64,000 nucleotides of DNA, taken from NCBI GenBank assembly GCA_028826165.1, contig JAPDFW010000079.1, positions 1-64,000 on the forward strand, given 5' to 3'. Origin of the DNA: Anaeramoeba ignava BMAN. Its lineage: Eukaryota > Protista > Anaeramoebae. The translations under genes and the position numbers were made by a program. The notes beneath the pieces are model-generated. The model worked only from the letters and a program-made list of their open reading frames with translations, was not told the origin of the DNA and ran no database searches. Of the stretch, positions 29,401-35,873 are shown in pieces; position 1 is the first letter of the stretch; each line of letters begins with the position of its first letter.

Positions 29401-31124
29401 AACTGAAATTTTTTTAAAATTAGGTTCTAATTGAAAAGGAATTGAAACAGGAATAATAACATAATCTCCACATGGAATTTCTGAAAAAGTAAATAATCCA
29501 TTTAAATCTGATTCAGTTGTTAATATTGGAAAATATTCAATTTCTTCTTCTTTTATTGTTTTAATTTCATTTTCAATTTTAAATCCATTTTTTTCTATCA
29601 TTTCTTTTGTTGTAAATAAAATAAATTTTGCATTTGCTATTTTATTATTTTCTAAATTTTGTTCTGAATCTAAAACTTTTCCTTCAATTGAAAATCTTTT
29701 AATTGTTAATGGTTTATTAACATTATGATTTATGAAATCAATTTGATAATCTTTAATCATCTAAATTTTTAAATTTTTAAATTTTAATTTTAATTTTAAA
29801 TTTTAATTTTAATTTTAATTTTAATTTTAATTTTAATTTTAATTTTAATTTTAATTTTAAATTTTAATTTTAATTTTAATTTTAATTTTAATTTTAATTT
29901 TAATTTTAATTTTAATTTTAATTTTAATTTTAATTTTAATTTTAATTTTAATTTTAATTTTAATTTTAATTTTAATTTTAATTTTAAATTTTAAATTTTA
30001 ATTTTAATTTTAATTTTTACATCAATATCAAAAATCCAAGAATTTGGAAAAGTTGATTTATCAATTTCAAATGAATATTTATCTGGAAGAAGATTTTTAA
30101 AAGTATAAATTCCTTTTTCATTTGTTTTTGAAGTTCTAATTATTCTTTCATTTTGAATTAAATTAACATTAATTCCTTTAACACCTTTTTCACAATTATC
30201 ACAAGTTGATTCAACCTTTAAAAATAAAAATAAAAATAAATTTATTTTGAATTTTTTAATTTTGAATTTTTTAATTTTGAATTTTTTAATTTTGAATTTT
30301 TTAATTTTGAATTTTTTAATTTTGAATTTTTTAATTTTGAATTTTTTAATTTTGAATTTTTAATTTTGAATTTTTAATTTGATTTTTAATTTTGTAATTT
30401 AAATTTTTGAATTTTTATTTTTAAAATAGAAATAAGAAAATTAATCATAAAAATGTTTTTTTGAATTTAAAATATTATTTTATTTTCATCTGAAATTCAG
30501 GTCCTTTAACTTTAAATTCATTTGGAACTTATTTTTAAAATAGAAAAAATTAAATTTTTCAAAAAAATGTTTTTTAATTTAAAATTTTAATTTTTTATTT
30601 TAATTTTAAAAGACCAATTTTAAGGTCCTTTAAATTTTAAAATAAAAATTTTAATTTTAATTGCTTCATAAATTGGAATAAAATAATATCCTTTTAAATT
30701 TTAATTTTAATTTTAATTTTAATTTTAATTTTAAATTTTGATTTTAATTTTAATTTTAATTTTAATTTTAATTTTAATTAATTTTAATTTTAATTTTAAT
30801 TTTAATTTAAATTTTAATTTTAATTTTTTATTTATAAAAAAAACCATTTGGTGCACAATTTTGTTTTTCTTTTAAGAAATTTGTATCAGTATTATAAAGT
30901 TCAATTGAAATTTCTGTTAAATCTATTGTTTTTATTAAACTAAATAATTTTTTTAAAATGAAAAAAAAATTTTTTTTAATTTTTTAATTATTTTTTTTGT
31001 TTTTAAAATACTTTTTAAGTTCATTTGATATTTTTATAAAACCTCCACATCCTTTAATTGAATCTTGAGAATTAATTAAAAATATTAAAAAGAAAGAAAG
31101 AAAAAGGATTTGAATAATTTTCAT
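26447..31124 (-). CDS. NOMO: Nodal modulator (NOMO) homolog, ER type-I membrane protein; multi-intron
   Basis: Signal peptide then GCGGFIK; CAPN|GYYFIPIYE; repeated carboxypeptidase-regulatory/Cna-B-like folds (GKYKYGP, LEPGEYYL..MLKEYDFTP, GNYRIRGLKPN); C-terminal TM. The 30240-30660 segment is garbled. Confidence 0.85.
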
Positions 31125-32140: not shown

Positions 32141-32275
32141 ATTTTTATTTTTTATTTATTGATGTTCTTCTCTTTTTTCCATCATTATTAACGGAAATAA
32201 ATAATTCTCAATTTCCACTTTTTTTTTTTAAATTTTTTGCTTTTTTCATTTTTTTTCTTTTCTCAATTTAATAAA

Positions 32276-33746
32276 ATGGAAACTTATTCAAATTTAGAAA
32301 AACTTTCAAAAGATTTAAAAAATTTATTTCAAAATCAAAATCAAAATGAAAATGAAAATGAAAGTTATTTTGATTTTGAAATAATTTGTGAACAAAATAA
32401 AACTTCATTTAAAACTCATAAATCAATTCTTTCTTCAAGAAGTCAATATTTTAAATCTCTTTTAAAATCTAAAATGAAAGAATATCAAGAAAATAAATTA
32501 ATTTTAAAAGATGTTTCAAGTTCAATTCTATCTTCAATTTTAAATTATTTTTATTCAGGAAAAATTGAAATTAATTCAGAAAATGTTATTGAAATTTTAA
32601 TTTTTTCATCAAAATATTTAATTGATGAATTAATTGAAACTTGTTCAAAATTTATTAAAAAGAATTTTAAATTTGAAATTGCTGTTGGTGTTCTTAAATT
32701 ATCTGAATCAATAAAATTAAATGAATTATTGGATTTTTCTTATCAATTTATTTTGGATAGATTTGAAGAATTTATTAAAACTCCTTTTTTTCTTGAACTT
32801 GAAGAAAATCATTTAAATTTTATTTTATCCAAAGATGAAATTTCAATGAATGATTTTGATATTTTTCAATCAATAATGAAATGGGGAAAACATAAATCAA
32901 ATATTATTCAAGAAAAAGAAAAATTACAAAAACAAATTTCAAATATTATTGATAAAATCAGATTTATTGATTTTTCAAAACAAGAACTTGAAGATACTTT
33001 AAAAGAAGATTTAATTCCAAATGAAATTTCAGAAAAATTAATTCAATTCCAAAAACTTCAAAATCAAAACAATGAAAAAAAATTAAATCAATTTATTGAA
33101 AAAGAAAATCAAAATCAAAATTCATTCATTTTCAAATCAAGATTTAAATCATCATCAATTATTAAAGAAAAAGAATATTTCAATAAGTTAAAAGAATGGA
33201 TAAATGATGACGAATTCTTTTTCCAAAATGAAGAAAGGATTTTCAGCCAAAAGAGATGGATTTGATTCCTATGAATTTCATAAAAAAGCTGATGAAAAAG
33301 GGAAAACATTAGTTATTATCAAAACAAAAGATAATTTTATCTTTGGAGGATTTACAAAAGTAGGATTTACAGGAGATAGAAAAAAATGGAATCAACATAC
33401 TATTCGACATGGAGGAGGAATTGATTATGATTCAGGTGATATTGTTGATCCAGATGCATTTATTTTTACATTAAGAAATGATAAGAATGATAGAAAACCA
33501 GAGAAATTTACAGTTAAAAAGGGGAAAGAAAATGTTGCTGTTCATTTTGAATATTCTTGGCATCCACAATTTGGAGCTGGTCGTGATATTTGTTTAATGT
33601 CTGATTTAAAAACTGGTTTTTCATATTTTGGGAAAACTTATAATTTACCAAATGGAATTCAAGAAGGAACAAAAGAAGCATATAGTTATTTAACTGGAAC
33701 TACTAATAAATTTGTTGTTGAAGAGATTGAAGCTTATTTCATTTAA
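32276..33746 (+). CDS. BTB-BACK + TLDc protein (frameshift in a T-run at ~33220)
   Basis: BTB (THKSILSSRSQYFKSLL...MKE...ILNYFYSGKI), BACK-like region, TLDc (GFSAKRDGFDSYEFHKKADEKGKTLVIIKTKDNFIFGGFT...VEEIEAYFI). Confidence 0.9.
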
Positions 33747-34156: not shown

Positions 34157-35696
34157 ATGACAGATAGATTAAAATTAGGTTTATTAAGTGAAAAAACAAT
34201 TATTGTTATTGAATTTGGTTCATATTTTATTAAATGTGGATTTGCTGGTGATTCTTCTCCAAGATATTTTATAAAATTAAATTCAATAAATCCAGAAACA
34301 AAAGAAAAAGTTTTTATTATATTTTTTATTTAAAAATTTTATTGATTTATTAATTTAATTTAAAAAAAATTTTTTCAATAAAGTTATTTCCTTTAAAAAA
34401 AACAAATCAAATTACTGAACAATCTTGGATTCATTTAGTTAACAAAGGTTTAAATTTAGTATTTTTAAAGTAAATAAAAAATTTAAAATAAAAAAATAAA
34501 AATTTTTTAATTAAAATTTATATTAATAATTTTCATTTAAAGATATTTACAAGTTAATACAAAAGATATTGTTGTAATTATTTGTGATGATGTTTTATGT
34601 CCAACTCCATTAAAAAAGGAAATTATAAAACAATTATTTGAAAAATATCAAGTTCCATTTGTTTTATTTGCTCCAAATCCTTTTCTTACTTTAATTCCTT
34701 ATAAAAAGAAAGATGGATTAATAATAGATTGTGGAAGAAGTGAAACTCGAATTATTCCAATATCCTTTTAATTAAAAATATTTTTATATTTTATTAAAAA
34801 AATTATTATTTACAAATTTCATGTTAAAAGAAAAAATTTTATTAAAAAGTTTTTTTTTTCTTTGATATTATTATTATTTTTATTTTCATTTTTACGTTTA
34901 TGAAGGTGTTCCATTATATTCTAATTTATATTATACAGAGCTTGGAATGATTGATATTATTCAAAATTTAAGAGAATTGCTAATTTTAAATTTAGAAGAA
35001 AAATCTCAAATTACAAAAGAAATGATCCAAGAAATTGATGATGAAACTTTGGAAGATATAATTTCAAAAATTGTTTTTATTCGAGGAAAATATGAGAAAA
35101 TTAATCCAAATCAAAAAATTAACAAAAAACAAAATGAATTGATAAAAAAACTTCAAATTGAAAAAAAACCAAAAGAAAATCAAAAAGAAATGAAAAAACT
35201 AGAAATTGAAGATATTAAAATCCCAATAAGAATCAAAGAAAAGAATTACAATTTAATAATAAAAGGCAAAATAAGAGGGAAAATAAGTGATATTTTATTT
35301 GAAGGAAAAGAAGAAAATGAATTTGAATCAATTATTGATATTTTTATTGAATGTTTAAAAAGTTGTAATTGTGATGTTAGAGCTTCTGTTTCACAGAATA
35401 TTATTTTATGTGGAGGAACTTCAATGATTCCTGGATTTCTTTCAAGATTAAGAGAAGAAGTTGATTTCAAATTGGATAATGATGAATATTTTAAAGATGT
35501 TCAATTTTTAAAAGGAAAATTACATTTTAATCATAATAAAAAAAATGCTAATTATATTTCTTGGATTGGAGGTTCTGTTATTGGTTCTTTAAATGATATT
35601 GTTGATAGATCTTTAAAAAGAGAAGTTTATTTAGAAAAAGGATCTAAAAGTTTTCAAGATTGGTCTAATTTTTTTGGTTATATTCAAGATTTTTAA
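34157..35696 (+). CDS. ACTR10: Actin-related protein 10 (dynactin Arp11); exons 34157-34309, 34384-34469, 34543-34759, 34896-35696
   Basis: The spliced frame is open throughout: EKTIIVIEFGSYFIKCGFAGDSSPR...YLQVNTKD.VVIICDDVLCP...LFEKYQVP...IDCGRSETRIIP|VYEGVP...NIILCGGTSMIPGFLSRL...NYISWIGGS...DWS, which are Arp10/11 hallmarks. Confidence 0.9.
34760..34895 (+). other. U12-type AT-AC spliceosomal intron (136 nt, phase 0) in ACTR10
   Basis: 5' site ATATCCTTTT, 3' site TTTTTAC, candidate branch TTCTTTGAT at 34858-34866; removal joins CCA|GTT in frame. Confidence 0.85.
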
Positions 35697-35873
35697 TTTA
35701 ACAAAAAGAACAAAAACAAAAATATTTTTTTTTTCTTTTCGGGATTTTTTTTGAATTCAAAAGAGAAAAAAGAAGAAAAAAGAAGAAAAAGTGAAAAATT
35801 TTTCTTTTTGAAATGAAATCAAATCAAATAAAAGCAAAAAAAAAGAAAAAGAAAAAGAAAATTAATTGAAAAT

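Follow-up and report, generated by a model that had tools for sequence, protein, structure and literature searches.

The ACTR10 gene of animals carries a U12-type intron, with the ends AT-AG in human, GT-AG in mouse and GA-AG in zebrafish according to three papers (PMC1557818, PMC2831892, PMC3564746). For Anaeramoeba ignava, too, U12 introns have been published, and a minor spliceosome has been inferred from them. In Supplementary Note 1 of the genome paper (PMC11550330, Jerlstrom-Hultqvist et al. 2024), 33 AT-AC introns were reported for A. ignava BMAN; 32 introns start with (G/A)TATCCTTT, and 27 of these are AT-AC. Two A. flamelloides strains have 8 and 10 GT-AG introns with the motif and none that is AT-AC. 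A minor spliceosome was considered "strongly suggested" in Anaeramoeba, and no conserved branch point was reported. The claim for Anaeramoeba so far consists of this one supplementary note, which uses the 5' motif only (PMC11550330). A literature search found no main text joining Anaeramoeba or metamonads with minor introns. According to the supplement of a protein-based survey (2023; PMC9887622), Metamonada and Discoba have lost the minor spliceosome, and no minor snRNAs turned up in the excavates sampled for a survey of snRNAs (PMC11347168). The present analysis adds snRNA genes for U11 and U6atac, three proteins, a branch motif and an intron position shared with animals.

Analysis of the window, a stretch of 64,000 nucleotides from A. 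ignava BMAN (contig C80), revealed an actin-family gene with the following features.

34157-35696, plus strand: ACTR10/Arp10 gene, actin family, four exons, 418 codons
34157..34309, plus strand: exon 1, 51 codons, Pfam Actin 3-31, supported by a frame check
34310..34383, plus strand: intron 1, GT-AG, phase 0, ordinary major type, at a site common to Lingula and Xenopus
34384..34469, plus strand: exon 2, the sole splice combination with an open frame, in agreement with NCBI protein P0001
34470..34542, plus strand: intron 2, GT-AG, phase 2, at a site common to animals and chytrids
34543..34759, plus strand: exon 3, ending ...ETRIIP, Pfam Actin 88-158
34760..34895, plus strand: predicted U12-type AT-AC intron, 136 nt, phase 0
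34760..34768, plus strand: U12 5' splice site ATATCCTTT, which meets RTATCCTTT; positions +4..+9 are complementary, 6/6, to the start of the U11 candidate and to the U6atac box
34858..34866, plus strand: putative U12 branch site TTCTTTGAT, presumed branch A at 34865 (-31)
34896..35696, plus strand: exon 4, starting VYEGVP, 266 codons plus stop, Pfam Actin 159-403
34731 and 34740 (donors) to 34905 (acceptor), plus strand: two in-frame GT-AG alternatives, which would delete 13 or 10 conserved residues

Only one choice of introns (34310-34383, 34470-34542 and 34760-34895) gives the open frame of 418 codons, and exon 4 is about 100% identical to the NCBI A. ignava protein P0001. Comparison of P0001 with solved structures gave 140 bits for dynactin Arp10/Arp11 and 52 bits for actin, Arp1 and Arp2, and ACTR10 was among the top named relatives. 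These scores agree with the identity proposed in an earlier reading of the sequence alone (here, the sequence-only reading); the predicted product is ACTR10/Arp10, nearest to dynactin Arp10/Arp11 among actin-fold proteins. The assembly contains a second copy on contig C64 (C64:621700-623100, corresponding to 34390-35800 of the window), which is identical to the C80 copy at 1397 of 1401 positions over the compared part; four substitutions and a few indels of one base separate the two. They are either haplotypes or the result of a recent duplication. P0001, the NCBI model for the C64 copy, lacks 18 residues of exon 3, probably owing to an intron falsely called around a one-base indel close to 34611. 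Upstream of ACTR10 (32237-33746), one ORF is followed by another in a different frame; from a reading of the translation by eye we take them to be BTB-domain-like and TLDc-like, and an assembly indel may have divided a single gene into these two ORFs.

The intron at 34760-34895 starts with ATATCCTTTT and ends with TTTTTAC. It lies between Pro and Val (...RIIP | VYEG...), and the exon that follows is in frame with the 249-aa ORF at 34947. Retention of the intron would lead to a stop after four codons. The coordinates, ends, reading frame and U12-type 5' site given in the sequence-only reading were all correct, and the branch-like sequence that it placed about 30 nt before the AC corresponds to TTCTTTGAT, a form of a motif enriched in AT-AC introns (see below). 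TTCTTTGAT differs from TTCCTTRAY by one change, which is compatible with G-U wobble, and lies farther from the 3' end than usual.

The nonamer ATATCCTTT was found 3 times in the window, with about 2 occurrences expected. The sites at 30686 and 41427 were rejected as U12 donors and look like minus-strand AAAG|GATAT acceptors. The nonamer alone is therefore not rare here; the ACTR10 intron stands above chance because the Pfam Actin match runs on across the junction, with exon 3 covering 88-158 and exon 4 beginning at 159 in an exon-by-exon search. An intron at this site is also present in five distant species. NCBI protein P0001 reads ...ETRIIPVYEGVP... across the junction. The AT-AC junction is therefore already used in public annotation, contrary to the earlier expectation that automated annotation could hide the intron. 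Because this junction is also the one in NCBI's model for the C64 copy, the ACTR10 intron is very probably one of those counted in PMC11550330. Judged by its sequence, it appears to be a real U12-type (minor-class) AT-AC intron.

For comparison of intron positions, the introns of six non-human ACTR10 genes were placed on a protein alignment. Five of the six carry an intron at the same column and in the same phase as the A. ignava AT-AC intron. The Lingula intron (L101:2092-2318) is a U12-type AT-AC intron with ATATCCTTT and TTCCTTAAC, the Xenopus intron (L103:6828-8178) is a U12-type GT-AG intron with GTATCCTTT and TTCTTAAC, and those of Clonorchis and two chytrids are major-type GT-AG introns; the mite gene has no intron at this site. 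The two further A. ignava ACTR10 introns likewise occupy shared sites. Since the site is common to five species, the intron would be older than the metamonad/opisthokont split. The simplest history would be a U12-type intron at the origin and later conversions to the major type. The suggestion of an ancestral position in the sequence-only reading thus finds an identical site in Lingula and Xenopus, and the literature, which describes a minor intron and a twintron, bears out its statement that vertebrate ACTR10 is a minor-intron gene. In the Clonorchis gene (L102), 8 of 10 introns measure only 32-44 nt, and the now major-type intron at the U12 site is one of these short ones.

Further AT-AC intron candidates (L053, L054, L058, L062, L051, L066/L070 and L068) were located in genes for a DHHC palmitoyltransferase, a Per1/PGAP3-like protein, an apyrase and a KTI12-family protein and in three unidentified genes. 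The flanking exons are contiguous on the Pfam model for the apyrase (226/227) and about contiguous for KTI12; for the DHHC and Per1 candidates, the family match covers the downstream exon only. About half of the 25 genome matches to the U12 5' site were rejected as U12 donors. At L060 (C75:334464, minus strand), ATATCCTTT is followed by TTCTTTGACTGAC, and the upstream sequence looks non-coding; this is perhaps a 65-nt AT-AC intron beside a microexon or in a UTR.

The last 50 nt of AT-AC candidates chosen by the 5' site, an AT-rich body and coding flanks only (n = 8) were inspected for a branch motif. The motif (CC/CT/TC)TTGAY, here YYTTGAY, occurred in 5 of 8 AT-AC introns and in none of 46 GT-AG introns (Fisher p 2e-5), a count made in the same small set from which the motif was read off and against GT-AG introns called heuristically. 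The remaining three candidates have TTGA in a weaker context. About a dozen intron-like genome matches with YYTTGAY were obtained in a search that required the motif. The distance from branch site to AC is about 12-42 nt in the A. ignava AT-AC introns. In animals and plants, this distance is usually 10-20 nt, a narrower range. The wide spread may have hidden the motif from the authors of the genome paper. YYTTGAY differs from TTCCTTRAY by one or two changes that are compatible with wobble, and therefore the statement that there is no conserved branch point (PMC11550330) is probably too strong.

The genome (42,843,398 bases, 147 contigs) was searched with Rfam profiles, and pattern searches were added for U12 and U4atac. 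A U6atac gene was found at C71:58882 (29.9 bits, E 3e-4, RF00619; below the gathering cut-off of 33) with a AAGGAGAGA box, an AGC triad and a closed internal stem-loop. The major U6 is encoded at a separate locus (C70:323239, 88 bits). Three weaker U6atac matches (L002-L004) look like coding or chance sequence and were rejected. A U11 gene was found at C1:50977 (26 bits, E 0.2, RF00548; below the gathering cut-off of 39), and its fold shows a four-way junction, an AUCAA loop, an Sm site and a 3' hairpin (z -3.6). Its 5' AAAGGA pairs 6/6 with positions +4..+9 of the ACTR10 intron. The sole U4 locus, a major U4 on C95 (L006:1509-1648), scored 39.7 as U4 and 35.2 as U4atac. This U4 carries UGCUUUUUC at stem I where UGCUAAUU is usual, which would need a bulge to pair with standard U6.

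U11, U6atac and U4 are each preceded, at a distance of 68-72 nt, by the sequence TCCATAAT (L005:1431, L001:1433, L006:1441), which is followed by nearly pure A/T. Among the loci examined, this arrangement was seen only at U11, U6atac, U4 and one simple repeat. TCCATAAT looks like a shared snRNA promoter element, with which further small RNA genes could be located in this genome. It also forms the start of a dispersed AT-rich repeat (e.g., L007-L011, among them C1:800569, C1:946776 and C2:265716), which is at least 80 nt long and seemingly exists in about 100 near-identical copies on many contigs.

The search for minor snRNAs and proteins proposed in the sequence-only reading thus yielded U11, U6atac and SNRNP25, but not the 48K zinc finger, a confident U12 or U4atac. 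Rfam gave no U12 match in the genome. Of the pattern searches for U12, one of which used a short U12 consensus, all five (5' motifs, promoter plus 5' end, promoter plus branch-recognition site) were negative apart from one candidate, and the search for promoter plus 5' end was swamped by the dispersed repeat. Candidates L044, L039 and L040 were rejected on reading the sequence. In the remaining candidate, a U12 5' end at C89:37058-37083(-), TGC, AACTA and GAGTAAGGAA follow one another as expected, and AACTA is complementary to helix Ia of U6atac; a post hoc estimate gives about 0.02 such matches by chance. No exact copy of the promoter motif was found where it usually lies. The Rfam match to U4atac is the major U4, and pattern searches of the genome for U4atac brought up no convincing candidate. 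C66:211242, the sequence that best complements U6atac, has no promoter and no stem I within the tested ranges and was rejected. Among the proteins, PDCD7 (E 7e-12), the SNRNP25 ubiquitin-like domain (Ubiquitin_4, E 6e-14) and CENATAC (E 4e-8) were all detected above the Pfam cut-offs. The domains zf-U11-48K and zf-SCNM1 were not detected in the genome; at 25-27 residues, they make this a weak test. The expectation that this metamonad host keeps a minor spliceosome, which PMC11550330 had already inferred, is supported by U11, U6atac, PDCD7, SNRNP25 and CENATAC.

We consider it highly probable (about 0.9) that this is an ancient U12-type intron removed by a conventional minor spliceosome. The sequence signals, the conserved position, the U11 and U6atac genes and the three minor-specific proteins are observed and would act together as follows. 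The 5' AAAGGA of U11 would pair with intron positions +4..+9. U12, which we infer, would pair with the degenerate branch site YYTTGAY and leave a presumed branch A bulged. U6atac, with U4atac as an inferred component, would then displace U11 through its AAGGAGAGA box, and catalysis would involve the AGC triad and the internal stem-loop. The predicted splicing would join the exon at the AC, 30 nt beyond the branch.

Another possibility is that the minor spliceosome is a hybrid, with U11 and U6atac kept and U12 and/or U4atac lost and replaced by U2 or U4. U12 and U4atac were not found confidently, while U11, U6atac, U4 and U6 were, and the sole U4 locus scores nearly as high with the U4atac profile as with its own. 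The shift of the branch consensus to TTGAY and the loose branch distance would also be explained, because major-spliceosome RNAs would then have replaced U12 or U4atac. However, out of thousands of candidates, the snRNA search scored only about 45, and even U11 was barely detected (E 0.2). In addition, C89 carries a U12-like 5' end whose elements are correctly ordered, and CENATAC is present. The branch motif is absent from major introns and allows C or T at two places where the GG of U12 would wobble. U4 in double duty for U4atac was rejected, as U4-U6atac pairing was no better than in shuffled sequences (p 0.13-0.7). The hybrid is without positive support, and we regard it as improbable.

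The conventional minor spliceosome must also be weighed against a reading in which the major spliceosome removes the AT-AC intron, as has been described in Giardia, and the U12-like signals are relics. U2-dependent AT-AC introns are described in PMC1557818 and in a Giardia paper, and the major introns of A. ignava have weak signals. This explanation is nevertheless very improbable: the full ATATCCTTT 5' site is kept in 27 AT-AC introns in a genome whose introns have 8% GC (PMC11550330), and U11, U6atac and minor-specific proteins are intact. Finally, the main transcript might use a GT-AG pair, or the locus might work as a twintron like vertebrate ACTR10, where U2-type alternatives surround the U12 intron. 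The sequence-only reading had pointed out the in-frame pair 34740-34905; it is present, as is a second at 34731-34905, and both remove conserved residues. Their use is unlikely, and as the main route or as part of a twintron it is the least probable of the explanations considered here: the conserved ETRIIP|VYEG strand would be lost, the donors GTGGAA/GTGAAA do not resemble those of the local major introns (GTAAAA, GTAAAT and GTTTTT), and the vertebrate U2 variants are frame-shifting (219 aa) and differ from the in-frame pairs found here.

The published suggestion of a minor spliceosome becomes good evidence once U11 and U6atac, the three proteins and the intron position common to animals are added. 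Loss of the minor spliceosome would accordingly have happened inside Metamonada, and the ACTR10 U12 intron would be at least as old as the ancestor that metamonads share with opisthokonts. This is a useful correction for intron evolution, although the system confirmed is a known one that had already been proposed for this lineage. A. ignava, with 27 AT-AC introns, and A. flamelloides, with 8-10 GT-AG introns and no AT-AC ones, offer a test case for subtype switching and decay.

Among the known systems that come close is the animal ACTR10 U12 intron. The gene is the same, the codon boundary and phase are the same in Xenopus and Lingula, and the Lingula intron is likewise AT-AC. The branch site differs, with TTCTTTGAT at -31 in A. 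ignava and TTCCTTAAC/TTCTTAAC near -12 in animal ACTR10. The snRNAs resemble Rfam U11 (RF00548) and U6atac (RF00619) in the 5'-site pairing boxes, in the four-way junction, AUCAA loop and Sm site of U11, and in the AGC triad and internal stem-loop of U6atac, but both are very AT-rich, with 26 and 29.9 bits against cut-offs of 39 and 33, and stem-loop II of the A. ignava U11 is pure A/U, unlike that of Rfam U11. The supplementary note in PMC11550330 names no genes and gives no snRNAs or proteins, whereas U11, U6atac, three proteins and YYTTGAY are described here. Giardia, also a metamonad, has non-canonical AT-AC ends too (PMC6679479 and a reference therein). Giardia reportedly has one kind of snRNAs with mixed features, in contrast to A. 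ignava with its separate U6 and U6atac genes and its minor-specific proteins (PMC6679479).
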